Assembly (NCBI GenBank): GCA_977016875.1 | Contig: CDRNST010000122.1 | Span: forward strand, 1,984,001 to 2,048,000 | Origin: Pavona decussata | Taxonomy: Eukaryota | Length of the DNA: 64,000 nt | Reading direction: 5' to 3' | In this document: one piece after another, positions 5,758 through 30,899 of the stretch | Layout of the letters: the number at the start of each line of letters is the position of its first letter | How positions within the stretch are numbered: the stretch's first letter is position 1 | The notes under the pieces: generated by a model | The model's input: the letters and a program-made list of their open reading frames with translations, nothing else | Told to the model about the DNA's origin: nothing | Databases searched by the model: none | Program-made: the position numbers and the translations under genes

Positions 5758-8700
5758 ATGGCACATGAGACCCAGGTAAGTGTTGTTAGTGTAGATTGGG
5801 TGTGTAAGCTGTGAGTAAGCTTTTGGGGGCGATGAATGCCACAAGGAATTTAAGTAAAGAATTGAAGTAAAGATTACGCTATTTAGTAAGGGTCTTGGGA
5901 TATTTTAAACCCAAGGAATGTTTGGTCTTTATTGCAGTTTGTAAAGACCGCAAAACTCCGCCAGATTTTCTTTGGTTTCTTCACCCTGCAGTCGCTAGGC
6001 TAGTTACGCCTCGATGAGTTGAGTTTCCTGCGCAGATTGCCGCAAACGCCAGCTTTCCAACAAAATGAAGCGCATTTGCGACATGACTCGATCGTAGGAA
6101 ACGGCTAAAATATGAAAATGGATTTCGTCTGTGTATTTGTTGTTTAAAGGTTTTGGAAAGGCACTAAAAGTTGGTTTGCGCAGCTAATTATGCAAGAAAA
6201 CAGAACTTCTAAAGGGGAAAAACAATAGAGCAAAGAAATGCCTTGGTTATTCGACGTTTTAGACGTTTTTCACCAAAAACTTACGTTTCCTCTTTTTTTT
6301 GAACGTACTAGACCTGTTTCAATGTTGCAGTAATGTTTTCAAACAGGAAGGAAATGAAATTTTCAAAAAAGTCTTCAAAAGTTTGAACAATGCCTATTTA
6401 CTTTTAATATTCAGAAAAGAACGATCTGCTCCATTGAGTTTGGTAATTTAAGCAATGGGACGTTTGTGAATATTTTGTTCATGGTTGGGCTCACGGATAC
6501 GTTTAATTCGTGCATCACTGGAGCTGGCAGTGAATTCAAAACAGACAAACGTCTTTGGAGAATGTTCTTACAAGCATAACTTCTCGATACTTCCTTCCTG
6601 TCGAATCATTTTGACTTGAATTTGTTTACGGGGCGTGAGCTAAGTGTTTTGATTGCGGTGTAAATTCGGCTGAAAATTGTTTTCCTTTTGAATTGCGTTT
6701 GTTTGCCATGTTATTTATTGATCGATATACACTTAGCTTGTCCCCGACTCTCGTACGCTTCAGGATAAACGTACGACAGCGCGCCAAACAAAGAAAATGA
6801 ACAAACAATTAAACAAAGCTAGAGTATTTTCCTGCGTGTTCGCGCGTTGCTCGAGTCCGGCCGAGTCAGCTAGAACAACTCTTTGAATTTTCGCTTTACT
6901 GCTGAAAACAGCACGCATTTATGATTTTATTGTATTTTTTTGCTAGGAACCAAAAGTTAGTAATCCTTTCCTGGAGAACCTGCGCAAATACACCGGGCTT
7001 TATGAGCCTGTGGTCAAGCGAGCAAAGCTCTCGTCATCATTATCACCAACACAAGTCGCTCCAGTGCAGACCCCAAAGAAGCACACATTCACTGTAGATG
7101 ATATACAGAAATGCCTTTTTAACACGTCAAGCATACAGCCAGTTAATACTCAGGAGCTGATCACCAAAGGTCAAGGAATTGCTTGTTTCTGTAAGTATAT
7201 AAACTATATAGATTTTAAATTATGTTGTTCTTGTACATGCATAATTGATCAACAGATTCTCTTCCTTTCGTGCGCTCCGCTTTGGTAATTCAGTAATTCG
7301 GCCTGCTTCGATGGGTATTGAAAAATCACGCAAAAGCGTTTGAAAAAACCAACTTTTTCACTGCCATCAAATGTTTTTTCATGGCAATCTAAATATTGGT
7401 TTAATACTAAAAACAGTTGATGTTGATCACAATTACTAAAACGGCATTAAAGTAACTAACCGGCCCCCGCGCTTGCGTGTTTCTTTAGCACTTTGCTTAC
7501 AACAGAATATTCAGAATTAATTGTTTAGTAGTCAAGCAGAATTCAAGTTTAATCGTCTTAATATTGTATTGATTTTCCAGGGTGTGACGCAAGCTCAACA
7601 AATCCAAGCTTTCAGTGTCCCCACCACAGAAATGAATCACCTACATCTCAACAAAACTCACAGCTACCACTGGCTGTAAGATCACTTCCGCCGGAAGTTG
7701 GGTTATGTACGTCAAGCATTCCCGGGGCAGGGTATGGTATTTGTGCCAAGCGAAAGATTCCTGTTGGTGCATGGATTGGTCCGTACGAAGGAAAATTTGT
7801 GAAGCCTGAAGAGCTGTCTTCATCCACGGATACATCCTACATGTGGGAGGTAGGTTTTCGTCACAAAATAAATTGATACGTTCAGATCCAACATCACACA
7901 TTCATTTCTCGGGCATGACCAGTTCTCCTCTTACTAGACTCTAGGCAATTCTCTCTTTCCCCCGTACATTGCCGAGCCAGAAGCGAAACACAAGCCACGT
8001 CTGAACACGAAAAATAGCCTCTTGCAAGCCCGTATTCTTTAACCACCGTTCACTCAATCAACTTTGTTCGTGCTTGCTTGCATCCTCAGATCTTCAAGGA
8101 CGGTAAATTGGCGGGCTTTGTGGACGGGAGTGACGAAAGAGTGTCAAGCTGGATGCGTTTCATCCGCTGCGCCAGACACAAAAATGAACAGAACCTGTTT
8201 GCCTTCCAGTACTTGGGAAAAGTGTACTACCGCTCATTCAAAGCAGTCCTGCCTGGAGAAGAAATGCTGGTCTGGTACGATGACAAATATCCCCAATACC
8301 ATGGTATTCCCAGAATCATCTTTGATATGGGTGCAGTTACGACACAAGGTAAGGGTCCCCAAAAGCGATCCAGGGCACCTTGTATTTCTGTGTGATAAAA
8401 ATTATGAGTAACTGCATGGTCCCAGAAAGTAATGATGGTTACTTTTTTTTCCATAGGAGGTCAGCCAGAAAAATCAGGGACTGTTCAGTCTGAAGCGAAG
8501 GAGTATGCATCATTTGAGACCGTAATGGCGCCAAATCATTTTCCACCCACACCTCCCAGCTCAGTCCCTTCACCCTCCAGTCCGCCTTCACCTAACAGCC
8601 AGCAAAACTCTCCCAAAGCATTCAGTGGCGAACCAGTCAGCGGCCTGCAGAGTGAAGTAACTTCCGCCTTCGACTTTTCGGTAGCCACTATGAGCCGTAA

Positions 8701-11622: not shown

Positions 11623-11934
11623 GGGTGTGTTTACATGATATCAGTATAGCTTTCATTCCGATTCGAGATGAAAACGTCCAACCCCATTTAACTGAACTAA
11701 AGTTAATATAAAACGATCAGTCACTGGTACTGCGTTAACATGACTCTGTTGCGCGTTTTCAGTACCTATCGGAACGATTAAATCGATCCGGTACAACTAC
11801 CTGTGTGAATTCGTATCAGTATGGTGATACCGCGGATACAACTTTTTGGTCCAGCGCCAATGTCATGATAACGAACGGAACCAGGATGATCTCATACCTG
11901 TTTGAAAGTCTACAAAATCATGTAAAGACATCCC
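11623..11934. mobile_element. Degenerate Harbinger-like MITE
   Basis: GGGTGTGTTTACATGA ... TCATGTAAAGACATCCC imperfect TIRs, preceded by TTA. Confidence 0.55.
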
Positions 11935-12591
11935 TACCTTAGTCGTCTATTTTGTGGAAATCCCAGCGTCTTTCGAGTGGTCTTTATAACTTCACAAAAA
12001 ATTGCAACTATTTTTTTACATAAGGTAAATTTTATAATTTGCCTGTCTTTTCCTAAGGTTAAGAGGAATGTTTCTTAAGACAAACTTATTGATGAAATTG
12101 CTCCTTTTTTCCTGTAAAAACATGGCCCAAAGGTCTTCAAAACACTCAATTCGAATTATTTTTGAATATTTTTTAATGGTTTGCGAAGCCTTGACTACAG
12201 CTGATCAATCCTTCAAGGACAATTGTTGTGTTGATCAAAAGATGCTGATTTAACTGCAGACTATAAAAACAAGAAGCTCAGGAGTTAGTTTGCTTTACAA
12301 TTGAACTAAAAAAACCTAAGGGATAATATTGAGTATTAAAGTGGAATAAAATGAGTGTTCTATGCTAATCTGTGATGTCTTCAAACTGATTTCAGCACTA
12401 TCACATGTATCAGGTATCAAATATACAAAAACGGACGCCTCAAGCCTTTCTGTAAGTGCCGACGCACATTGCGCTCTTTCGTTTTGCAAGGTATTGTAGT
12501 TTTTATTCTGTATTCTCTTATACCATTTTTTCCTTTTGTTTTAAGTAATTTTTTGATACGCCGGTATTCACAGAAGGAGCATGACAACATA

Positions 12592-13008
12592 CAGTAAAAA
12601 CCCGCATATAAGAACCTAGAATTCTCGAGGTCAGGCTGAACAGGTTCTTATATTTTAGGGTAGCTTTTTACAATTCAGGCTGATTAGGTTCTTAATAGGT
12701 TCTTATTTTTCAGAGGTTGTCGTAGTGTAACCATTGGCAGAAATCGTCTATAAACCGTCTATATTGAACAATAGCCTTATGGAAAACATATTTCTAGTGA
12801 AACTCCAAACAAATGTAAATCAAAGAAAACATATATACACAATAACTTTTTGTCACACAATTAAAATCCAGAATGTTGACCATCAAAATTGGAGTGATTG
12901 TTTTTGTATAAGAACCAATTTCTTTGCCAGGCTGAACACGTTCTTATATTTTTGGGTATTTAAATGCCAAATTTCAGCCTGTAGGTTCTTATATGCGGGT
13001 TTTTACTG
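12592..13008. mobile_element. Tc1/mariner-type MITE just downstream of the paralog 3 stop codon
   Basis: Perfect 26-bp TIR CAGTAAAAACCCGCATATAAGAACCT; TA on both flanks (12590-12591, 13009-13010). Confidence 0.85.
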
Positions 13009-13175
13009 TACGCAAGGTCATTTGCTCACACACACTGAATATTTCGAAAAAAAGTTACGAGTTTTAAAACTTGTAGATCAAATAAATCAAACTGAAAGTA
13101 TCGTATTGTGATTGACAGCAATTGTTAGACAAAAAGATAGACACTTCGTTCCTTCTTTTTCATTCAAGCAAGCTT

Positions 13176-16100: not shown

Positions 16101-19100
16101 ACTGATACATTAATACATACACAGCGGACCATCTTTCGACATACCATGTAAGCAGGCCTAAGTCTTAAATGAAAGCACAACTTAAGTTTAGGTTAAGTTT
16201 AATAATACTTTGTTAGAGGGACTTACATGACTAGATAATAATTGAGGGAAACTGAATTCCCTCACTAAGGTTACTCTCTAATTACAGCATTGGCATTGAA
16301 CTCGACTTTGGACTTTTTTTTATTGTCAGACTGATGTGGGGGAATATCAAGAAATCAACCTTAGAGTGATAAATCAACAGTTTGAAATTTAACACCTTGC
16401 AAACAAAACGGCCGAATTCTATAGGAAGTTTAACATCGAACAGAGCCAATCAAAAGCGGGCAAATATTTTGAATTTTCCTGAACCGAGCAGTGCAAAGTT
16501 AACAGGTTAACACTTATCAGCCATATTACGTCAGTAGTTGTTGTTAATTTGTCATTCCTTTTGCCAATAAGTGGAAAATGTTCTGGCTTTATAGTTAAAA
16601 TGGTCTTTCAGCTGTTTATCTAGCATGTCGATGTCAAAAGATGGTATGATGAAAGATAGTCACTATTCTCTGCTGCACATGTAACACTGAAAGTGGCTAT
16701 AAACATATGTAGCAGTTAAGTTTGGAAACAGCTAGTTTATCGTTAAACATAACCCATCTCTAGAGATACAACGGTTGCTAATTGCTCAAAATTGAGTTGG
16801 AATAAAATATACCTCCCACATGTAAGGTGCATCTGTTCCAAGACAAACTTGGTCGGCTCTCACTATTTCGCCTTCATAAGGTCCAATCCAGGTTCCCATG
16901 GGAATACGCTGTTTCGCGCACACCCCATAACCTGCTGCAGGGAGACCAGACTTGCACAGGCCGACTTCATTTGGAAAAGACTCCACTGCGTAAGGCCATT
17001 GTAAGTTGTTGTTATTTGTTTTGTTGTTGTTGTTGTTAACTGGTGTTGATATTTTGAGGGTTTGGTGAGGACCGTGTATTTGGCATATTTCTGGTTTCTC
17101 TTGATAACATCCTTTACACCCTGGGGGAGAGGGAAGAAATGAATAGTCATGATATGCCACAAATTCCACGTGTCTCACAGATCACTACATTAGCCATTTG
17201 CATAAAATTGTAACAAACGACACATCAACTAAGAAACTTTTGAATGCAGGGGGCCAGACGACGCACAACTAAACTGTTCTGAATATGTTTCGTTGCCAGA
17301 TCTCTTGTAGTACAAATGCCTGTGCCAGACGTCACTTTACGTGTAAATAAGATTTGTCCCTGAAAAAGACTAGCAGTACTAGCTGAAATATTGGCCCAAA
17401 TAAATTGCCTTTTGCCGTAGTGTCAGCCCTGCAATCACTTTGGTTAACAGCAACTAAGGGGGATATTTAGAGATATCTTAAAATATATATATTTGTCACG
17501 AGCAAAATTACCCCTTGGGTGTGGTTGTTTAAAAGCCTTTTCAAAGTGTTACCGACTCGGACCTAACAACCTACTTATCTTAAGATTCTGAATGTACTTT
17601 TTGAACGTCGTCTGCCAAGGATTGTACTTTTTCAAGTGAATCTCGGTGGTAATGGAGGAAAGAACTGTTAAAGGAGAATAATCCAGAACTAGCGTATAAT
17701 ACATATGTTGAACTAGAAGAACAGTTATTCTGACAGCGGTGCGATGCGCGTTATTGGGGCGCGTTATTCTGGAGCCTGAAAAGAGCGACTGTAAACCAGT
17801 TGAATTAAATTTTTTCCTCATGACTGTAACGATTCAACAAGGGCGACTTTTATGAAGTCTTACACATTAACAAAGACTACTACCAGTTTTTTTTTTTCAA
17901 AGACGGTGGCGCGGACGATGCGAGAATCTGAAATTGCGTCGATCTTCGAGCGGTAAGCACTGAACTGAAGCGAGAGCCGCAAGTATAATGAGGGCGGCTT
18001 GCGTCCTTTCACTCGCCCTCCTTGAAAGACGTAGATCTCGCTCGCAGTCTAACAGCAACAAACATCGAATCTTCTTCATGTTTCCGACTTGTATACATAT
18101 TTATTAAATTATTTATGGTTATATTTATTTAAACTCCTACTATAGGGCGAACTATTTTAGGAGCACATCATTAAAGCATTAAATCAAAGCTGGGCCTCCA
18201 AGGATGCCTCTCGTTGAAGCATACAGGTTGATCCGAACAATAAAGACTTTAGTTTTGTCTCAGAGCTAGCGGAGAAACAGGCCGTGAGTCTAGACAGCCA
18301 TCCTCAAACCCTCAGGTAGCATTGTCTTGGCCAAGTTCTACTCAAGTTGAGTATATTTTACTTGAGGCTTTTTTTCGTTATAACGTCTCGCTCTTTTGAC
18401 ATTCGTTTCATTTCGCTGCTCTAAATTTCGTTTTGTTTCATTGCTATAATTGCATATTCCTTGTGAACTGCGTCTACTCGTTTTTAAGAAGCGTGTCAAA
18501 AATAAATAAATGCATGACAGGGTGGCTTTGAATCAATATGGTGTAGCAGTTAAGGGTGTTCAGATTTAATGTTTTATTACCTTCTTTACGCTTGAGCACT
18601 TCAATATGTCGCGCAGTTCAGTTGTATTTTCTGAATTCTTTTATGGATCGTGTATGATAATCATTTACACAGGTGTACCGAGCATGCAAACCATTTGATG
18701 GAGCTCAAAATTTGCAAAAATAACCCAACTTTACTGACAGTGTCGTTGTAAAAAGTGAGTACAGATGCGAATCAAATTTGCACTCTTTTCGCGGACTTTT
18801 AAGCTATTCATCTCCCAAGGTGGGTGTTTTTCTTGTTGTTTGTGCGGTTATTGTGCGGATTTACGGCGACTTTTGCCGGGGCTTGAATGACATTGGAAAC
18901 GAGTACTGAAAATGTGGAGTATGTAGAAAGCCTGAGNNNNNNNNNNNNNNNNNNNNNNNNNNNNNNNNNNNNNNNNNNNNNNNNNNNNNNNNNNNNNNNN
19001 NNNNNNNNNNNNNNNNNNNNNNNNNNNNNNNNNNNNNNNNNNNNNNNNNNNNNNNNNNNNNNNNAAAGTCTTCGCTGCATCAGAAGGCAAGTTGGACAGA

Positions 19101-21716
19101 GTCCTGCAGTCAACCAAGTGTGCAATGCAAGATATTGGTCTTGAATGTAACCCGAAAAAGTACTCAGTGATTCACTTGAAAAGAGGTATTCAAATGTGCA
19201 ACGAGCCAGGCGTGAAGATGGGTGACCAAATGACCATTACAGCCTTTCACGATGACACAGTACAAATTTTTGGGTGTGCAAGAGAACCTTTTAGAAGACG
19301 AAAAGCTTGCCTTGGCAGGTGCGGCGAAGGAGGATCTTCGCAGAGTTTTAATCATGTGGCCTCAAACCCACTTTCGGACTTTAATCTCGTGGTGGCGACA
19401 AACCAGTACGTCTTGCCTGTCTTGAGTTATTTGATGTTGACGCGGCACTGGCCATTTGTGAGAGTTGAAAAATGTTGACAGAGAACCCCGCAAAATAAAC
19501 CTAGAGAACGGAGGTAAACACCCTTCTATTCTTACCTCCTTGCTGTATCTCCCTAGGGATAAAGGAGAAGGAGACTGCGCTCTGTGGAACACGAGTACAA
19601 ACTTACAAAGATCAAGGCGGCGCTCATGTTATACCAAAACGCAGACCAGACGATGCTGGTAGTAAGAGAATTCAAAGGAACGCGCGGAGATTTTAGGTCA
19701 CAATTCACGGCTACGTGGAGGAACTAGATATTGCATAATAACTTGAACACCCAATCCGAAAGTGCTTCACTGCTAACGGAGACGAAATTTCAACAAAGAA
19801 TTGGAGTAAAATTGAAGAAAGCCAAAGAATTGCAGTTCTGGGAGACCGCCAAAAGTAAGAAATGGCAAGGAAAGTTATTCTGTACGAGATGGCAAGATAA
19901 AAGCTTGAAGGTGACAAGCTGCTTTGCATGGTTTAAGAGTGGAATGCCTGTCCATCATACACTATAGCAGACATGTATGAGTTGTGTGAGCAACTACTGC
20001 CCGCAAAGCTGTACACTAGTGAGAAAACTAAGACCTGCACGGAAGGTTAAGCAATGTGTAGACTGTGAGGTAAGGCCCCCCGAAAGCCGTCTCCCACATC
20101 CTGGCGGGTTGTGCTGCCCTGGTATAAACCAAATACCTCATTGTCCAGGAATAACAATGCATTAAAGATCTTGTGTTATAAACTCTGTAGTTTTACATGA
20201 AACACCGGTTGGTTGACCAAGTTCCACCTTGGCACTCGCCAGTGATGACAAATCCACGTAATCAGCCTGATGATTGTGAGGCATTTTGGGATGTTCCCAT
20301 AGAAGCAGAGCACCATGCAGTTAGAGCTAATAGGATTGACACAAGAATTGTGAGTCACAGGGATAAGAAAGTAACCATGCCAGAAATGACCTGCCCAGAA
20401 AAATCAAAGAAAAAGCAGAAAAATCAAGAGAAGCTGATGAAATATGACGTGGGGAACTGAAACAGTGCTATCAAGAATACACTGTGGAACAATACAATAT
20501 CGTTATTGACGTGTTGGGGGGGGGGGGGGTGGTCGAAGGACCTCGAGTGCTCGATGCTGAAGAGGCTAGGAAGAAGAGGGAAGAAATTGTTAGCGAATAT
20601 GCCGAAGGCTGTCATCTCCAACAGCCTGAACATTGCCCGAACTTTTAAAATAGTCGTTTTGGTGCTTAGGCTTGATAGCCTTGCTATTAGTTATAGTGTT
20701 TCCTCAAATATTTTCAGTGTAAGTTTTTATTACTGGACTTTCACATTTGTGATCTAAATGTTTAAAAAACAATGGACTCGATTTCTGCTATACCAAATTA
20801 TACAACACAGGTTTCTTTTTAATTTTTATAGGCAAAGACAGGATTTTCTTCATTTTCTTTTTATTTAACTGTTTTATTTGTTTCAAATAGATCTAAAGCT
20901 TATCTCAGTCAGCGAACCGGTGAAATTATGTTGGTGTCAGAAATTTAATGAATAACAAACAAATTTCCCAGTGAGATCTGAACGATTACAACATCGAGTG
21001 TTATTTCTGAGCAACTCTTTGTGAGACTGAGTATTATGCTTAAACAGACTGAAAGAAAACAAGTCAGGATTTGCCGATAAATTAATACATATACAGTGAT
21101 ATTGCAAATGATAGTTGCATTTTGATAATCCTTGCACTTTTCTTGCTAGACTCTACTGCTTTGATCAACATTACAGTTCGGTCAATTCATTTTTTGTTCA
21201 GTGTTGCCATAATTAAAGCCGGTTTTTTTGCACCCAACGTCATATCCTGGCTCTTACACAAGTCACACCATGATGAAGGGACATCAAGGAAATAAATTAT
21301 ATTCCGCGATACATTGCATTGCATAACATACGAATGATAGCTATAACAAATTAAACTTTATAAGGACTGTTTTGGTTGGCAAATCAAATGGTACTCATAA
21401 ACCGACATCAAAGGATACGGCTTTTAACAAGGTTTTGACGCAGCAACATTTTGCGGCAAAGTTAGGTAAAATATTAACAATTTAGGAACTTACAGTAGCT
21501 GTTGACTTCCTCTCCGCGTTGAAGAGATGTTTTTAACTCATCTTTGTTTACAAGTCTTACTTCATTTCTTCTGTACAAGCATCGTTGAAGATCGTTTGGT
21601 GTAAAGAGGACTGGCTGCGCTGTGTGCGGCGTCGGGTACGATCTTTCTTGCGTAACGTTTGAATCTTTGCGGCCTGTATACGCGGTTTTTACTCTTGGAA
21701 ATCCAGCGTTACTCAT
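13176..21716 (-). CDS. PRDM6: PRDM6-like protein, paralog 3 (~559 aa). Exons 21716-21494, 17120-16813, 15066-14808, 14065-13176
   Basis: Pre-SET FTPNDLQRCLY; knuckle WCKGC..CQIH; [29 protein letters not shown]; four fingers incl. CGYCSRSFSGATTLHNH. Exon sum 1680 nt. The first exon join crosses the N-gap and a retroelement, so it is less certain. Confidence 0.85.
15612..16109. mobile_element. Non-autonomous DNA transposon in an intron of paralog 3
   Basis: TGCATCAGTCAATTCCAACAGTGCCC ... GGGCACAGCTGGTATTGACTGATACA imperfect TIRs; TTA on both flanks. Confidence 0.7.
18937..19064. other. Assembly gap (128 N)
   Basis: Run of n characters. Confidence 1.
19065..20700 (+). mobile_element. Decayed non-LTR retrotransposon with restriction-like endonuclease (R4/NeSL-type), 3' part, antisense within a paralog 3 intron
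   Basis: Frameshifted motifs in the expected order: DIGLECNPKK, YKFLGV, NQYVLPVLSYLM, LLYLPRDKG, KKWQGKLF, CCHC knuckle CRL*GKAP..HILAGC, RLE WDVPI..RANRID..EMTCP, terminal SLNIARTFK. Confidence 0.85.
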
Positions 21717-24700
21717 CTAAAAATGACAATAAAAATAAACCACATTACTGTCTGCCAAACTTCTCCATACATGTAATGAAGAAGAACGTCAAAAGGCGTA
21801 ACAGTCCTAGACATTGGATTGCTGTCAGACGAAGCAGTATCATTCTAAATTACCACGCTGCTTGCCGAGCATAATTACACCCTTATTAAATGTGTGATAT
21901 AAAATACAAAATGAACAAACTCATGTACTATTTGGCCAAAGATTACAATGACATTTACTTGAGACAACTTCCCTGGAGGGCCAGTCGAAAATACAGCAAA
22001 TCACACTGAACAGGGATTAATTTTAGCGCCTTTGGGGCCGGTCTGAAGGAATTCTTACGCAGACTTTGACGAAGTCAAAGTTATGACGTAAGTCAGTCAA
22101 ATTAGAGGTCTGTTTATTAAAAACATGCCCTGACATTCCCAACTATGGTCATAATGATATGTGTATTGATCTGTATAGCATGAATGCTGATGATTCTTAC
22201 TTCCCTGATTTCAATTTTGGTATTTGCTGTGATCAGTTTGCGAAAACGTAAGGAGGAAAACATTGAGCTTTTAGTGCATTGTGTCGCTTCATTGTTGTAC
22301 ATGCATAGAAGCAGGAGGCGCAGGAGTTTAGTAACTCCAGGTGCAACCTTTGTAGAGGCTGCTATCGAACCATGCCAAATTGGTGAAGTTTTTATTAATA
22401 CAAACCATTAACTATCCTTGTTTGAATGCTTCTTTGTGTAGTGGCTAAGCATTTCGTGAAAGGATGAGGTGAACTTTGCCTTGACGAAGTAAGCCAAGCG
22501 AAACGCAAGATAAAGAAATGCAAATTTTTCGTGAGAAGTTCCATAGTTTTGAATCTCAATCAACCTTGTCAAAGGATCGTCCGACTGTTTGAAATGGCAA
22601 TAATAATGGATTGAAATTGTTGTTTTCAACTGAATAAACAGGAATTACTTTGATTTTGATAAGAATAATTGACCAGTTTAAATACCATCATTTTTATCTC
22701 TTATGCGCCTACATTCTGCTCTAACACGTAGAAATGGATGTGTTTTGTTGTGTCTTGTCTTGAAAAGCAGAAATAAACAACCTTTTGGAGTGTCCTGTCC
22801 ACTCACGTATCACGAACAAACTGAGCCCTTCAATTAAACCTAATGCCTACAATATTACAGACCAGAGCTCTCACCCTGCCCGGGAAATCCTGAACCAACA
22901 TTACGCTAGAAGCGCTCGTTTCGCTGATAAGAAATCATGGTTAGCTGTTCTCGGAATCACCATGCATATTTGCATTCTAATCAGTCAACAAGTTTCGACC
23001 CAACTTACTTGGTTCTTACGGCCTGTTTTCCGTTCTACAGATTTGTGGAGTTGTCCGTTCCAGTATAAATTAACAATGTGCAGTTTGTGGCTCGCAGATA
23101 AGCTCACGGAATTTCAGAGCTTTTAACTCACTTAACTCACTTACGTAACGCTACAACGCTTAAATCCTAACCGCCTGGAGAAGTCTCTTTAACAGTGATG
23201 ATACTGTTGAGTGAGTTGTTCTCATTTAACGGAGAATGGCTGTTCATGTATGCATAATAAGGTGAAAAGCCACTGACAGGCGCTTCTGATTGACAAATGT
23301 CGTTTAAGTTCAATTGTGACGTAATTTTGAACTCAACATGATTAAATCGGGTGTTGTGTTTTAGCTTGGGAGACTTCACTCACATCGACCACATCAAAAG
23401 ATGATATTGGTTCAAAACTCAGCCATGTACAGCTCAAAGATTTTTGCTGCTTTCCCTTACGTATTTTTTAGGACCGTAGATTTGCCAAGTTTGCCTGCAT
23501 GGCTTCACTGAAGGTAGGAAACATCTTTTATATATACCAACCACTGCGTAATGACGACGAATTGAATAAATTTGATAAGAATGACTAATTTCGCCATTTC
23601 TTTTCAAAATATGTCAGTTCACATTTCTGGTCACCCATAGGTCGGCTTATGATTTGCACTTCTCAGTAGGTTTGCCCCTATTTGGCAGTGATCAATGCCA
23701 ATAACCGATAAAATTCAAAACTAGATTAACACCAAATAAAAGAGTCAGGCTTGATTGTTTTTAATTAGTAGACGACAAAATGATTGAAATGGGGAAATCA
23801 CGATGTTTACTATTAGGACACATTAGGAACTCAATCAAACAAACTAAAAGTTTCTAAAGATGGGGCGAGCAATCAGTCGCCAATTGTACCAACAACAAGA
23901 AGTAGCTTTGATTGCATGGCCGTAACTAAGTACATACTAATCATATTTGAGGATTCTTTATTCGGGAGGTGTCTTCAAGAAATATGAATGGATGATTTGT
24001 TTTTGGCATGTTGGCTTGCAGATGGCAATAACCTGATCAAAGTAAGTGTTCTGTAATTTTGATCGTTTCTTCCACTACCCTGACTATGCTTCTATCCTTC
24101 AAGTCCGTGTGTACATGTACTTCGTGTTTTTTGTTTTTTTTTTGTACTGTATTGACCTTGGCGAAGCCAATGAATAAATGCCCAGGCTGACGGGGTAGCA
24201 TGTACACAAATGATGACGCTCAATGCAGCAAAGACAAACGCAGATGTAGTTTCATCACAATATTGCTTTCTTTGTGGGTCTTACAAGAGTTCTGAGTTAC
24301 TTTCAATCACAATGCATCATGGGTAGACGTTCATCCTTCTCTTTGTATAATCATAGTCATCTCCGCGTAGACACCTCAGGAAATGCTAACACCGACAAGG
24401 CTTCTGAGAGTATTCTTTTAAAAATGCCTTCTGCAAGTGTAGATAAACGTTTTATATACTGAGACATGTTCTTTCTTTGTCGGATATTTAAGCTCTCGTG
24501 TCAATATGCATCACTCAACTACCAGTTCTATACATACTTGATTTATTGTTTTTTGTATTTACAACTGTACAATTGATTTGTTTTTCATTGTATTCTGATA
24601 TGTCAAATTTCAACTCAATGCAAACTTTGTACGGCGGGCTATACTAAATACAGTTAACCCCTACTTTTATTATTTACCTATGAACGCTAGAGAGACTGGC

Positions 24701-24905
24701 GCATACGCATTATTTACTCGGCTCGTATGCCTAAATTCTGCCTCAGAAATTGTTCAATCTCTTCCAACGTTCATGCACCTCAGTTGTCATCGATTAGTAA
24801 TTGTTCCAATATTATATTCTTTTGTTTTATCCTCTCTTTCTAAGCAATCCACATTATTGTCAGGGATTTTGTGATTACTGCTTGACATTTATTTCTGGAA
24901 AAACA

Positions 24906-27900
24906 TCAGCCAGAAGTTTCGCACTCAAATAGCTGCCTTCCTTTGTCATGCTGCAATCGAATGTGGTTGTTCAAAGTCACCGATTGGCTGAAAGAACTTG
25001 AACAATATCCGCAAACAAATGGCTTCTTTATTTCCAGGGTGTCAAATTGATTGTGCTGATGCAATGGCTGTGGGGCCTGAGCATGGATGTTTGTGTGGAG
25101 CGAATTTGAACTTTGAACCCATGAACCGGGATTCATTACGAGTGCGCTCTGGTCATCTAAGGCGGGAGTCGATCTATCGTTTGTTTTCTGTGTGTCTTTT
25201 GGTGAATTCCTGTGATTCTGCTTCAGTGGAGTATCCTGGTTTCTCGCAACAGAATTCGACGCATGTTTCAAACCAAGTTCCTCTTTACGAGACGGGTGTA
25301 GATGAGAATTCCTTCCGTCAACTGACATTTTGGCAAACGCGAAAGGACTGCCGGGAGTGGAAAGAGGAGAGGGAGGAGGACTGGGAAAAAAAGAGTCCAC
25401 AGCACTTGTGGTTAGCGGTTGACGATCATTCTCGATCTTTTCCTCGTGAGGAGAAATAACAATGACTTGATCGGGCTGCGAACCCACACCTAACGAAAAA
25501 CAACAAGTGACAATTCGTTAAAAGTATTACCTCTTTTTGAATTAACTGGTATCAATAAACGCCTTAGTTTGGATATAGGCATCCTTACGAGCTGCAGTAA
25601 GAACCACAAAGATAGGTAATGTAGACAGATAGAAAGGTAGTTTGTGCGCGGTTATGGAAGAGTCCTAACTGGTAAATTATACTACCGGGTCAGTGAACGG
25701 ATCGACCATGTTTATCCTCTTTTCATTGTTTACAAGATTTCTGCAGCGGTGTTGATTTTTTTACTGTGCAAAATGAGATTCAATGCACGACTGACGGTCA
25801 ACTACCGTCCAAGTGGCAAAGGGCCTGATTCGGAGGTGGAGAGGCTGGACAAAGCTATCGGCCGAACACTTACCACGTGGTATTACAACTCCCATGTCAA
25901 ATATGGCCGTTGGGATTCCAAGGTATTGTGGATATTTTTCATCGTACCAGACCAGCATTTCTTCTCCAGGAAGGATGTTCTTGAAAGTGCGATAAAACAG
26001 TTTCCCCAAGTACTGGAAAGCAAACATGTTTTGTTCCTGTTTGTGGCGAGCACAGCGAATAAAACGCATCCAGCTTGTGACATTTAAGTCACTTCCGTCA
26101 ATATATCCTGACAATTTACCGTCTTCGAAGATCTGGAAAAGTGCATGAGATGGGCACAAATGAGTGCTATAATACGTAGTCACTAAACGATGCATGAAGA
26201 TACTGGCTGCTCTATTTGTCTGTCAACGTCGAATCACTGAGAGTCGACTTAAGCTGGTGCAAAGGTACTGGTCTGCGCAGTTAGCTCCCTTATTCTATAA
26301 AGGAAGGTTTTCAGTAGAGTATCGGAAGTAATCCTTGTTCGCCTTGGTTTGATTTAGTACGCTGTGTGATTGGTCGAAAAAGCCCGCGCTACTTTTTTGA
26401 CCAATTAAAGGTGAGGGCAGAACCAATAGTGACCCACTGTTTTTGTCTTGAGTTCTGATTAGGTCACGGTGTTATTCTCTTGAATCTTGGATTAATACTC
26501 CCAAATGATTAACACTGGGAGACCTAAAAATAATTTCTTTTAAAAAGTATGAATAAATAAATGTTTGTTGCTTGAGTCAGAACCTTTTGAGTTGAGTGAA
26601 AGGGCGCATTGCCACAAGGTCTGAGCCCTAAAAGGCTCAGTTGTGACTGTCAAGGTGATGACTTTGGTGTGGGTTTCATGACACTCAGTTGAAAATTGAT
26701 TTTACGGCAATGGTTCCGTGAACATACCTCCCACATGTAGGATGTATCCATGGACGAAGACAGCTCTTCAGACTTCACAAATTTTCCTTCATACGGACCA
26801 ATCCATGCGCCAACAGGAATCTTTCGCTTGGCACAAATACCGCACCCTGCCCCGGGAATGCTTGACGTACATAAGCCAACTTCCGGCGGAAGTGACCTTA
26901 AAGCCAGTGGAAGCTGTGAGTTTTGTTGAGATGCGAATGCTTTGCGCTTGTGACGGGGACACTGAAAGTTTGAAACTTCTGAACTTGCATCGCACCCTGG
27001 AATACAAAAGAATAATAATTCGATGATCTCGATGATTAGTGCATATATGTATTGCAAGTTGCATTCCCAATGTCCGTTTTACAAAAGTATCCTTTAGACT
27101 TCCAAATTAGCGAGAAATGCAATAATATTCATTTACCTAGTAATGGATAAAACTCCTTGTTAAGTAAAGCTTTAATGACTTTTTTCCGGACCTGTCTGAA
27201 ATCACGGTCAGTAACGAAAGCATCCTGACTAAATATCATTATTATTTATTACTAGTAATAATCGTAGATTTGAGAGTACGTTCGATGTCACCAGGCCAAT
27301 CTCGCTCCCAGGCTCTCTCTCTCTCTTTGGATGTCATCCGCCCCTTCCAAAAAATCCGCGGGGGATGCCAGATGTGCGTCCCAAGATCCATCGACCCATC
27401 CACGACAAGTCCCATAAAATCTCGACTCAAATCCGTATTAGGAAGCGTTCTTCCTACGTCGAACGCAATTATTATCGACTACTTGAAGACTTGCTTCCTG
27501 GGCGACCGAAAGTATTAACCGACTGTGACGTGCAGAAGCACTGAACATTAATATGTTTAAAAAGCTGTCGAAACTACATTATATCTCTCTTAGCTCTTTT
27601 ATTCTAAGACAAATTGTCCCTGCATACTCACAGAAACATTTACTTTGTTGTGTTACCGCTGGTTGCTTGAAATTGATGAGCCGGACATCACTTTGACTGA
27701 AGAGACACCTCTGTAAATCTTTGATTGTGAAGTGGTCCCTGGCCATAGCACATGGAGGGGGACTGGGACCAGTGACGTTTTCCTGGTGCCGAGTTTTCTT
27801 TCTGACAGGTTGAAAGCCATTTCTCCAGTCGTAATCACTGTATCGTTTTGCAGGACGTTTTGTCTGCTGTATGGAGAGAGAACATGTAATATCAGTCTCT

Positions 27901-28680
27901 CAGGGTTCCTTTCCTTTCTTGAACTCATGTTGTGTCAGTGACAATTGTCGACTTCAACAACCAGTTTTTTAATGCCTCAATAAACGAACTCGTTTGATTA
28001 TTAAACCCCTCTTTACCTCTGACTCAAAATTAAAAATTATCCGTCTAAAATTAATTTATGTTTAATAATTGTACATTTATAGTTTTAGAGCCTCGTTTGA
28101 AACTCTTTTCTAGAGTATTTTGTTCTATTGCGTGCATTAATTTTCATTTGGAAAATTAAGAATGTATCAACATTATATTAATCCAACAATAAAGTCTTCA
28201 TTGATCTTCTCTACACCTTACCACTTTGCGCAGATCAGTTTAATGTAGAGTTTCCCTGATCAGTAATTTTGCGCCATGATATCATGTTTTGTTGTTGTTG
28301 ATAATGATAAACTATATACGTGATAAAATAAAAGGACAACGAACTCAGCGGATTGGAATATGTACTGTATATAAACATAAGGCAGTGATGTGTGACTAAC
28401 ACTGCTCGTGTATATACACTGTAAATGTTTTATAAGTTCTTGGTTTATGATCTTTTCAAGTCTTGTACAGCGTTTCTTGTTGAAATGCCATGTTGAAACC
28501 CTGAGTCGTGAATGCGATACGTTTCAAGAATTTCTTACTGAACAAAGTAAACACGTCAAAATAGATACAGATTTTTGAATGCATTAATTATAACATATTG
28601 TAGGCTACAAACGGTCATCCCGGTTCGGTCGTATTTAGTACATTACGAGTTTCTCTTACCTCGCATTCCAGCACGTCCAT
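24906..28680 (-). CDS. PRDM6: PRDM6-like protein, paralog 4 (~455 aa), intact PR domain with a single intact zinc finger. Exons 28680-28660, 27866-27632, 26996-26728, 26132-25874, 25489-24906
   Basis: MDVLECE|gtaag; FTIKDLQRCLF; CFWC..CPRH; PR exons are the same length as in paralog 2 (269 and 259 nt). Last exon has only FVCGYCSSSFSQSVTLNNHIRLQH. Exon sum 1368 nt. NAGNAG acceptor at 27864-27869. Confidence 0.85.
27251..27463 (-). repeat. Dispersed ~200-bp element, copy B
   Basis: Reverse complement aligns by eye with 184-387. Confidence 0.8.
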
Positions 28681-30899
28681 TTTCGTGACTTCGTTTTTGG
28701 TTTTTGTTTGAGTTATTAGTAGAGCTCTCAGGTTTAAAGCGATCTTTATATTGCGGGCTTGAGAATCCGGGTAGTGAATATCGCGCGTTATCGATCAGTT
28801 CTGTTAAAGTTTGATTTAAATATTTAAAGAGACGGTTGATATTTTGGCGCCTTTTTCATGATAAATTAAAGGTCCTTGAGTGAAAAGGTCTTTGTAATTT
28901 TTTGAATAATAGTGATTTAAACAATATATTTGGGAGGGACTTTGTCAGTTGGTAATGTATGTTGAACGGTCGAGAGAGTTGGCGCCATTTTCTAGCAAAA
29001 TAATTATTGGTTAATATTCGCCTTGAGGCGATATTGAAGTAAAGGTTGAGAGAAACTGCCGGCGTAGAAACCGTATGACGTGAATATATTCCAACATATG
29101 CCTCATACTCGGTTGTGCTTCAAGTAAAGTCAGCTTTATTTGGTCTTATTTATGCAGGGTCGCCCTTTCAGCACCTGGCTGGTATCAGGGGCTCTGCATA
29201 ATTTATGACTACTGCAAAATAAAAGATTGTATCATAAATTACGCTTCATGTAACAGATTATAGTGAGAGTTTTGTGAGATTTAAGACAAGAAACTAATTA
29301 GTAATTCATCTATTAACATAATTATCTTCTGTGGGGCTCGGCGCGGGTTTTGGCTTGTCTGAAAACGTTATTCAATTCACACACGGTGTGCGATAACCTC
29401 AAGCTGAAATAAAGAAAACTTTTGAATGAACCCGCGTAAGGTAAGAAACAAGAACAAGAAAAATCGTTTTTTTTCCCTTTTTCTTTTAATATGCTTGTGT
29501 TAAGACTTGACTTATTTCAGGTCGATTCAGGAGTGCATATACTTATTTTAAAAAGTGTGAACCGTTAAGCGTTAGCTGTTTTCAACCCCAGAGTCTTGTG
29601 GCTTGACTGACCAAGTCGAAAAGGCGTCTTCCCACCGTTAGTTAAGCCTTGCGGCGCAAGGAGCTCTGGGTTGGACAATGGTATAAGGACAAGAACTCAG
29701 CAGCACTGCACATGCGTTTTTGGCCTCGTGCTTCCGCGAATAATAGGAACATTCTTCTTGTATTTATGCTCGTGCGCAAGCGTGTGCAGTGAACTGTAGT
29801 CAGAAATGTATTCAATACGACGAAAATACAACGTATAATTTAGGCTTAAGTCCGCTTAAGGATTGCCCAGATTTCGTTAAAGGAAAGGCTTCGCTTCGAA
29901 GTATAATAAAAATAGAGAAAAAGGTTTGGCCCGACTTTTATGTTTTAAGAGTTGACCCAAAATCAGTCGGTTCACTTCGCTTTCATTGCATTGTTTTTTT
30001 TGGTCAAATTCAAAAATACCCAATATCATGCAGCTATCAACCGAATCATGCAGCTTTCATCCGAAGATGATGGACAGGTTAAATTATCATTATGTTGGGT
30101 TTTGGCGGGAAACAAGCCCCACCTTGTGTGTGCAAACACTTGAATGATCTTGCATGAAAACAATTTCTTATCTGATATCTGGTGACTTTAAAATACAATA
30201 GCTTTCCGCCCGTGGTTTACAATGGCTTTTAAATTAGTTTCCCTTAAAGAACGCATCAACCCGTGACAGATTCGAATATTAGCTCCAGCGGTAGATAACA
30301 AAAGAAGGCAGACTTTAAACAAAAGAGAGAAATAAAATAAGAGATGTCGGGGCCTTAATAAAAATAATTGAACTACACTGTTCTATGCAGATACTAAGGA
30401 CCTCCAAGAACTTTACAAACTGCGAAATCAGTCTTCTATGAGCCTGCCAGTCAGAAATTGAAATTTGTTACTTGTTATTCTGATCGGTATTTATCAGGGA
30501 TTATCGGTTTGTTTTCGTGATGTTCATTCTTCTGTGACTTCAAATGATATTTCAAGCCATTATCGAAATCTAATCGCCGGGCTGTGCAACGCTGAACAGT
30601 GATAAATCGACCCTCTAGAAGCAAGTAATCATGCCAACTCGTAAAAGACAAAAAGTTCTTTCATGAACTCAATAATGATATGCAATCTTACATAATTAAA
30701 CTCAACAGAGGGTGAAGGGCCCTTTGGCAGCCATTAAAGAGCCGGGGAGATTAAGTGACGCGAACTGTATAAGTTATTGATCAAATTTGGCGGGTAAACA
30801 TAATAATAGTTTGTGAATTTCGGCCAAGAATAGAACGGCTTCCAGAGCAGAAACCCAGCACTTCATTGGAATGGTTACACTTCAGGACCGAAACGTTAA

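Follow-up and report, generated by a model that had tools for sequence, protein, structure and literature searches.

A transcribed, finger-reduced PRDM6-type gene under purifying selection in a tandem cluster of the stony coral Pavona decussata

The DNA considered here is a stretch of 64,000 nucleotides from the coral Pavona decussata (assembly GCA_977016875.1, contig CDRNST010000122.1, forward-strand positions 1,984,001 to 2,048,000), hereafter called the window, which carries seven tandem genes of a single PRDM6-type family. The fourth of these, paralog 4 (P4), is the subject of this report. Our data indicate, with a probability that we put at about 0.7, that P4 is a functional, transcribed member of this cluster which belongs to an old, syntenic and finger-reduced lineage of stony corals, and that it probably acts via protein contacts. 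The part of this statement according to which P4 is a functional finger-reduced paralog is very probable. Positions refer to the window throughout, and the coordinates of exons and other features are collected in Table 1.

P4 is transcribed and correctly spliced. The gene lies on the minus strand and has at least four coding exons (0, A, B and C), which add up to 408 codons in frame; every splice site is canonical GT..AG (the donor of exon 0 is GTGAGT, and that of exon B is GTAAGT following a final exonic G), and the window copy has no stop or frameshift within these four exons ahead of the final TGA. RNA support was taken from assembled contigs of four public runs from four studies, compared over 24201-30200; one of the runs is a declared coral metatranscriptome and three were guessed as RNA. 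The contigs lie on 24591-25460, 25872-26132 and 26728-26996 and leave the introns between these uncovered. The spliced joint between exons A and B (26132 to 26728) occurs in two runs, and its skipped ends CT..AC read GT..AG on the minus strand. The other two junctions are represented by loose ends: the end of one contig at 25872 is followed by nine further letters, equal to the start of exon C, giving a junction at 25874/25489 after two ambiguous letters are counted, and another ends at 26996 with a loose end of 22 nucleotides (nt) that maps to 27632-27653, the junction of exons 0 and A. Expression, which the preliminary description of the gene had left to be checked, is thus seen for the spliced message.

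At the 3' end, RNA contigs from three runs cross the stop unspliced and reach 24591, and the stop is unchanged in every run that covers it; no joint or loose end leaving exon C was found among the RNA contigs, and no insertion or deletion in the P4 exons was found in the four runs. AATAAA signals are present on the minus strand at 24888-24893, 24666-24671 and 24542-24547. A stop within the terminal exon normally escapes nonsense-mediated decay, and since the P4 stop sits there, such decay is not expected for the P4 mRNA. At the 5' end, the open frame of exon 0 is bounded by an acceptor-like site near 27868, and the orthologs are without the first ATG of the window copy. The true start of P4 probably sits in a further 5' exon; a search for a further 5' coding exon with this start found none. 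The contigs from the Logan collection used below (L003-L005 and L007) contain intron sequence ahead of exon C and are not evidence of splicing for those species.

The modules upstream of the fingers are intact, as had been proposed from the sequence at the outset. The PR/SET domain is divided over exons A and B, and both are matched by the Pfam family PRDM2_PR (PF21549), exon B with E 4.2e-27 and 94.8 bits (cut-off 27) and exon A with E 2.4e-8 and 34.2 bits. The best match of exon B in the PDB is PRDM9, ungapped over 12-76/110-174. When P4 is aligned without gaps to mouse PRDM9, the counterparts of the catalytic residues Tyr276, Tyr341 and Tyr357 are seen to be kept (GPY, FYR and VWY), the first in the GPYEG of exon A and the other two in exon B; the retention of catalysis and of corepressor binding, put forward in the preliminary description, is putative. 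The N-terminal motif FTIKDLQRCLF is present, and the zinc knuckle CFWC-x11-CPRH, which is assembled across the junction of exons 0 and A, is kept in all P4-type orthologs and resembles in kind the knuckle of Xenopus PRDM6 (C-x2-C-x7-C-x2-H-G-P).

The finger-coding last exon is in a different state. Exon C was aligned to its counterparts in the six siblings, and the picture given in the preliminary description, of an exon open for about 194 codons with fingers 1 and 2 decayed, finger 3 intact with a changed helix and finger 4 cut, is borne out. The open reading frame (ORF) runs for 193 codons to a TGA, with a chance probability of about 2e-5 at the local composition, and all strings quoted earlier are present. 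Fingers 1 and 2 survive as a stretch free of cysteine and shorter than in the siblings. Finger 3 is the sole intact zinc finger of P4 and the only C2H2 match in the exon (Pfam zf-C2H2 at residues 167-190, as against four fingers in the siblings), and its helix reads SQSVTLNN where the siblings have GATTLNN. In finger 4 the second Cys has become Ser, and the in-frame TGA stands where the siblings have Lys (G-stop-CFS against GKTFS). A possible remnant of finger 4 had also been noted in a shifted frame beyond the stop. The letters are there and resemble the sibling tail RHQRIPGDC, and a comparable remnant after the stop (..DPCECVP) is seen in the ortholog L002, but no search scored the similarity as significant and the remnant stays a possible one. 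In a nucleotide comparison (blastn) of P4 with P2 nothing matches in exon C, and the decay in place is therefore shown at the protein level and by the orthologs. The product of exon C was modelled with AlphaFold from a 12-row alignment, and the overall confidence is low, with a mean predicted local distance difference test score (pLDDT) of 54.6; only residues ~155-184, which correspond to finger 3, are predicted to fold, as beta-beta-alpha with pLDDT ~70-75, and the rest of the chain is modelled without secondary structure.

When the last exon of P4 and a distant ortholog were used as queries, 17 P4-type protein clusters were obtained. Positional orthologs were found in five other coral assemblies (L001, L002, L008, L009 and L010); in each of them exons 0, A and B are intact and the order P5-P4-P3 is kept, with a P5-like finger exon upstream and a P3-like exon A downstream. 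The fingers of this lineage form a graded series in which finger 1 is dead throughout. In L010, L002, L008 and most of the Logan clusters, fingers 2 and 3 are both intact and finger 4 is cut soon after ..GGR.FA..; fingers 2 and 3 are kept as an intact tandem pair in 12 of the 17 clusters. In L007 the cysteines of finger 2 are lost, finger 3 is intact and the ..ETSG stop is identical to that of the window. L009, a contig of 3x coverage, has lost the first Cys of finger 2 and breaks off after the finger-2 remnant, so that finger 3 is unreadable; with exon C broken and coverage at this level, it was left out of the exon C comparisons. In the window copy finger 2 has been removed by an in-frame deletion, ahead of an intact finger 3 and the ..ETSG stop. 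The same in-frame removal with finger 3 intact is found in L006, a metagenome scaffold with 94% protein identity to the window, where a deletion of ~165 bp exchanges the last eight codons. It is also found in L001 (~91% nt identity), where finger 3 is present but lies beyond new stops, a 2-bp and a 4-bp deletion having shifted 43 codons.

Five of the orthologs have a last exon readable to its end, and their stop is at the same position as in the window (L001, L007) or adjacent to it (L002, L008, L010). Fingers 1 and 4 are lost in all syntenic orthologs in which the end of exon C is readable. Because these orthologs stop at or next to the same place, fingers 1 and 4 were already missing when the lineages of these corals split, the synonymous divergence (dS) between them reaching ~1.2. 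The loss of finger 2 is later and limited to the clade of the window. The conservation of finger loss among corals, which the preliminary description had suggested looking for, is thereby found for fingers 1 and 4. The erosion of this copy is real, as it had claimed, but is neither recent nor private to the copy; it is the old, stepwise state of a whole orthologous lineage.

Some further differences were observed at the orthologs. The ORF of L006 (1-648, compared with window 24746-24935) ends in ..GRQERWKRLNNF and not in ..GRQLFECETSG, a difference due either to a genuine deletion allele or to an error of assembly. In L001 a reverse-transcriptase ORF (Pfam RVT_1) occupies 11884-13047, about 1.2 kb downstream of the P4 ortholog, and is absent from the matching place in the window. 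The Logan contig L003 (at 1182-1191) skips ~1.47 kb downstream of the P4-type gene that is present in the genome assembly of the same coral (L002:10992-12461); an insertion polymorphism or splicing within the 3' untranslated region (UTR) may account for this difference.

Selection was estimated over the P4-type orthologs by maximum likelihood as the ratio of nonsynonymous to synonymous rates (omega) in IQ-TREE with the GY+F3X4 codon model, and tested against omega = 1 by twice the log-likelihood difference (2dlnL); the PR exons span six coral genomes. Omega is significantly below 1 for exon A (0.27, 2dlnL 58.9), exon B (0.16, 2dlnL 92.4) and exon C as a whole (0.575, 2dlnL 30.9). Pairwise values for the PR exons lie between 0.05 and 0.30 in every ortholog pair, and the comparison of the window with L001 gives 0.17, 0.22 and 0.37 for exons A, B and C. 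Neutral evolution of the PR exons, which would have spoken against the earlier proposal, is not seen. The N-terminal motif, the zinc knuckle and the PR domain are under purifying selection. The variants between the window and the RNA contigs are in line with this, with nonsynonymous to synonymous counts of 7:8 in the PR exons and 7:7 in exon C, or 14:15 combined, for an expected synonymous share of 0.26 (combined p = 0.0025). Within exon C the values are 0.31 for a motif block close to the start of the exon (2dlnL 20.4), 0.71 for the middle linker with the dead fingers (2dlnL 6.9) and 0.39 from finger 3 to the stop (2dlnL 16.8), which places the constraint on exon C mainly at finger 3 and at this VIVVSP / FPSPPPSP block.

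The motif block is specific to the P4 lineage. Its columns are invariant or nearly so in the alignment of P4-type proteins, the VVSP columns being nearly invariant. FPSPPPSP occurs in 17 of 17 P4-type clusters and in 0 full-finger PRDM6 proteins, and a block of the type PD[QE]VIV[VI]SPHEE is found in the P4-type ORFs that cover the region and is absent from full-finger PRDM6. In the AlphaFold model the block has raised pLDDT without a fold, as linear motifs would show. In SUMO-interaction motifs (SIMs), four V/I residues usually form a hydrophobic core, with acidic or phosphorylatable residues at its flanks. The P4 block, D/E-x-[VI][VI][VI][VI]-S-P with acidic residues, fits this pattern (the core in the window copy is VIVI and not VIVV) and looks like a candidate SIM by pattern match alone.

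Part of the PR domain has exchanged sequence with a sibling. In the blastn comparison of P4 with P2, exon A is 86.6% identical at the nucleotide level (27024-26721 against 7552-7856) and exon B 80%, with no match in exon 0, in exon C or in the introns beyond the tract. In exon A the dS between P2 and P4 is about 0.27 (0.17-0.27), and the values for P2 against the L001 ortholog and for P4 against L001 are both 0.28. In exon B the dS between P2 and P4 is ~1.1. Since the three exon A values are about equal while exon B stands at 1.1, exon A was homogenised between P2 and P4 at about the point where the lineages of L001 and the window parted. Judged by the same comparisons, the other three exons (0, B and C) escaped this homogenisation. 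Conversion cannot account for the low omega of exon B, for the omega of exon A after conversion, or for the upkeep of the frame in exons 0 and C.

As to the function of P4, a protein-contact role is suggested because one finger cannot reproduce a four-finger site and because partners of PRDM6 are known. Mouse PRDM6 is a transcriptional repressor that associates with HP1-beta, HDAC1-3, p300 and G9a, and PR domains are believed to serve in dimerisation and in the binding of partners (PMC3836774). In vertebrate PRDM6 and other PRDMs the PR domain and the knuckle are likewise believed to recruit G9a, HDACs and HP1. A single finger in a disordered tail would hardly recognise the site of the four-finger siblings unaided, and P4 would most likely act through protein contacts on chromatin made by its PR domain and knuckle, to which the linear motifs, one of them SIM-like, may add further contacts. 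P4 could in this way be a modulator or competitor of its full-finger siblings, or a cofactor that is brought to chromatin by others. Titration of partners away from the siblings was the role originally put forward; among the functional possibilities, we would give such a decoy roughly one third of the weight, the remainder being divided between a cofactor and residual binding of nucleic acid.

That last possibility forms an alternative in its own right, in which P4 is still directed by sequence: the remaining finger or fingers, perhaps together with the knuckle, would contact DNA or RNA, either at some shorter or otherwise different site or within a heterodimer with a full-finger sibling, and the gene would be subfunctionalised. 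Two-finger proteins can bind DNA specifically, and an intact pair of this kind is what most of the P4-type clusters have kept. Finger 3 is as conserved as those of the siblings, and its contact positions 3 and 6 (T and N) are kept. However, the clade of the window has one finger which in the structural model would be flanked by disorder, the helix positions -1 and +2 have changed (G to Q and T to V), and finger 3 of L001 is out of frame if that assembly is right. We therefore regard a sequence-directed P4 as unlikely.

A bolder proposal, which we make tentatively and hold to be rather doubtful, is that of a coral-specific regulatory layer. P4-type genes would have given up autonomous DNA recognition stepwise, from four fingers to two and to one, and perhaps to none in one species, would have gained a block of SIM-like and proline-directed phospho-motifs, and would now serve as signal-dependent adaptors or dominant-negative partners of the siblings. 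If true, the series of orthologs would be a natural finger-deletion series under selection.

Several points weigh against a functional P4 that works by protein contacts, and most of them could equally be claimed for a transcribed pseudogene in slow decay, with PR exons kept by conversion from P2 and an mRNA that is noise. The conversion of exon A means that part of the PR conservation could be borrowed. Exon C evolves fast, above all in its middle linker. Among the orthologs, the deletions of L001 create stops before finger 3, the contig of L009 breaks off, and L006 has had its 3' end replaced. The RNA evidence consists of assembled contigs of low depth, and the RNA origin of three of the four runs is a guess, though two of these show the spliced joint. 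The 5' end and the start codon are not fixed by the present model. Finally, a decoy and a cofactor are not separable from sequence, and we infer the mechanism only. A pseudogene is nevertheless quite improbable. Exon B has seen no conversion and yet has an omega of 0.16 across orthologs, and exon A after conversion has 0.17 between the window and L001. Exons 0 and C are without nucleotide similarity to P2, yet their frame, splice sites and stop have been kept over a dS of ~0.7-1.2 with insertions and deletions in frame only; exon C as a whole departs significantly from neutrality, and the lineage-specific motif block is conserved. The frame-shifted segment of L001, read in the old frame, still has an omega of 0.12, from which it follows that the lesion is recent or an assembly error.

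The remaining alternative, in which an alternative 3' exon or isoform restores the finger array and the truncation is an annotation artefact, is very improbable: it can appeal only to the general possibility of isoforms missed by the contigs, whereas the contigs of three runs run through the stop with nothing leaving exon C, the same truncated ORF is found in many other corals, and no second finger-coding exon was found at 17.2-31.7 kb with a relaxed C2H2 pattern and tblastn, which matched finger 3 only, so that the restoring isoform named earlier as grounds for abandoning the proposal is seen neither in the RNA contigs nor in the nearby DNA.

The setting of P4 is a cluster in which the gene orientation switches once and in which the copies are not equivalent to one another. 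The window has 39% G+C and one run of N (18937-19064). The genes have in common a layout of an N-terminal-motif exon, an exon A in which the first half of the PR/SET domain follows the zinc knuckle, an exon B with the second half, and a last exon that encodes a variable linker rich in Pro and Ser and, after it, four fingers of the C2H2 type, which are reduced in P4. Pairwise dS by YN00 and NG86 fails for most paralog pairs of the window, the usable ones being P2-P4 and the ortholog pairs; all pairs other than P2-P4 are saturated at synonymous sites, and the duplications of the cluster are therefore old.

The cluster is assigned on sequence to the PRDM6 subfamily. When the last exon of P3 was used in a word search, the named homologs were proteins that NCBI lists as PRDM6, from Acropora muricata, Oculina patagonica, Nematostella, Exaiptasia, Xenopus, fish and bird. 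Over its full length the four-finger array of P2 aligns with Xenopus PRDM6 at ~60% identity, and similarly with fish and bird PRDM6; the zinc knuckle and the N-terminal motif are also common to the cluster proteins and PRDM6. P4 itself scores higher against PRDM6 than against PRDM9-like proteins, with 85 bits for exon B against Xenopus PRDM6 and 74 against a fish PRDM9-like protein, and 67-68 against 46 bits for exon A. In per-exon trees, which contain PRDM6 sequences only and are weak at the deep nodes, P2 and the P4-type genes join Oculina and Acropora PRDM6 with 87-100% support; the PR domain, being short, gives no finer order among these sequences. The PR exons match PRDM9, PRDM14 and PRDM12 in the PDB at like scores, and also PRDM4, but since the PDB is without any PRDM6 chain this ranking is uninformative on the subfamily. 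An identity as PRDM14, prompted by the four Nematostella Prdm14 paralogs, was rejected, the finger array and the homolog names indicating PRDM6. P4 would accordingly be a derived PRDM6 paralog by descent, with an architecture that departs from the canonical four-finger PRDM6. Vervoort et al. (PMC4760075) count Prdm6 among the oldest Prdm subfamilies of metazoans and report it from cnidarians.

Two other elements of the window deserve mention. The intron between exons 0 and A of P4 contains at 27250-27470 a short dispersed repeat with very high summed RNA-contig depth and many different flanks; a second copy, inverted and 72% identical, lies at 179-387, and a further copy elsewhere in L001. The high-depth stretch 27333-27472, which has no match in Rfam or Pfam, was considered as a part of the P4 gene and rejected in favour of this repeat. 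On the minus strand at 21474-21716 there is an ORF with an exon 0-type motif (FTPNDLQRCLY..VRLVN), 4.3 kb upstream of exon A of P3 and separated from it by the N run, which by its motif is probably exon 0 of paralog 3.

Table 1. Positions of the parts of P4, of the tract of conversion with P2 and of the cluster genes in the window
Feature	Positions	Strand	Content
P4 exon 0 (minimal, first in-frame ATG to donor)	27632-27746	-	FTIKDLQRCLF..VRLIN motif and first Cys pair of the knuckle (..KCF + 1 nt)
P4 exon 0 frame upstream of first ATG	27747-27868	-	open; encodes ..RNGFQPVRKKTR..; conserved in orthologs and full-length PRDM6 N-termini
P4 exon A	26728-26996	-	rest of zinc knuckle (W-C..x11..CPRH) and N-terminal half of PR/SET domain
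P4 exon B	25874-26132	-	C-terminal half of PR/SET domain
P4 exon C, coding part	24906-25489	-	2 nt + 193 codons + TGA (24908-24906); ORF 24906-25487; disordered linker rich in Pro and Ser, then the finger region
P4 motif block	25344-25478	-	QPDQVIVISPHEE at 25440-25478 (SIM-like hydrophobic core, acidic/Ser flanks) and DSFFPSPPPSPLSTPGSP at 25344-25397
P4 remains of fingers 1 and 2	25029-25124	-	SWVQSSNSLHTNIHAQAPQP / LHQHNQFDTLEI; Cys-free, shorter than siblings, in-frame deletions
P4 finger 3 with linker	24948-25028	-	KKPF-VCGYC..SFSQSVTLNNHIRLQH; C-x2-C-x12-H-x4-H; finger itself 24948-25013
P4 cut finger 4	24906-24947	-	DKGRQLFECETSG and TGA; second Cys to Ser; stop at sibling Lys position
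P4 possible frame-shifted remnant of finger-4 helix and C-terminal tail	24844-24882	-	SSNHKIPDNNVDC; beyond the stop
P4 3' UTR, minimum extent	24591-24905	-	contiguous RNA contigs 24591-24772, 24743-24921 and 24892-25276 through the stop
Conversion tract, P2 and P4	7552-7856 and 26721-27024	+ and -	exon A and ~28 nt of upstream intron
P1	1769-4067	+	PRDM6-type cluster member
P2	7562-9193	+	PRDM6-type cluster member
P3	13179-17001	-	PRDM6-type cluster member
P4	24906-27746	-	gene under study, fourth of seven
P5	31791-34686	-	PRDM6-type cluster member
P6	41472-44149	-	PRDM6-type cluster member
P7	59862-62778	-	PRDM6-type cluster member

A PRDM protein is usually read as a PR domain together with a finger array which aims that domain at DNA. 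The corals provide a conserved syntenic series in which the fingers dwindle as selection continues to act on the PR domain, on the knuckle and on linear motifs that are new, and the orthologs of this one gene are usable to ask what the PR domain of PRDM6 does without fingers. The same series could show whether finger-poor paralogs regulate their full-length neighbours. For annotators there is also a caution, in that the P4 copy should not be labelled a pseudogene.

Compared with PRDM6 (PRISM), P4 has the same order of an N-terminal motif, a zinc knuckle (C-x2-C..C-x2-H), a PR/SET domain over two exons, a linker and fingers in one last exon. It differs in having one of the four fingers (two in the wider P4 lineage) and in the VIVVSP / FPSPPPSP block, which occurs in the P4 lineage and not in full-finger PRDM6. 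Vertebrates have a single PRDM6 gene, as against the seven tandem copies of the coral cluster.

PRDM7, which has lost most of its finger array, resembles P4 in that the PR/SET domain is kept while the fingers are mostly gone. It is, however, a recent, primate-specific gene of another subfamily (PRDM7/9), whereas the coral lineage is old (dS ~1) and its remaining tail is under selection. PRDM7 is presented as a young PRDM9 duplicate that keeps an active PR/SET domain (PMC4919437), and the finger array of ruminant PRDM7 has disruptive mutations (PMC4874674).

A further likeness is to the cnidarian PRDM9-type paralogs with SET domain and zinc fingers, which are stated to date from the hexacoral ancestor and include a SET-only duplicate of 'S' structure, found across Scleractinia, whose degenerated C2H2 finger is often still detected by InterPro; their catalytic tyrosines are mostly kept, their tandem location is noted and their function is given as unknown (bioRxiv 10.64898/2026.09.07.749791, September 2026). 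These 'S' and 'SZ' paralogs, compared here by description only, resemble the P4 lineage in architecture and conservation, and the 'S' duplicate is possibly the same gene lineage as P4. They are assigned to PRDM9 in that preprint, whereas the P4 sequences match PRDM6 best, and the preprint is without the stepwise loss of fingers from four to two to one, the shared stop or the motif block. Finger-poor PRDM paralogs are thus already known from PRDM7 and from the cnidarian S-type genes, and P4 is not a new kind of system; what is new here is the assignment to PRDM6, the gene model backed by RNA, the stop that the orthologs share, the 4-2-1 series of fingers, the conversion specific to one exon, the lineage motif block and the estimates of selection.

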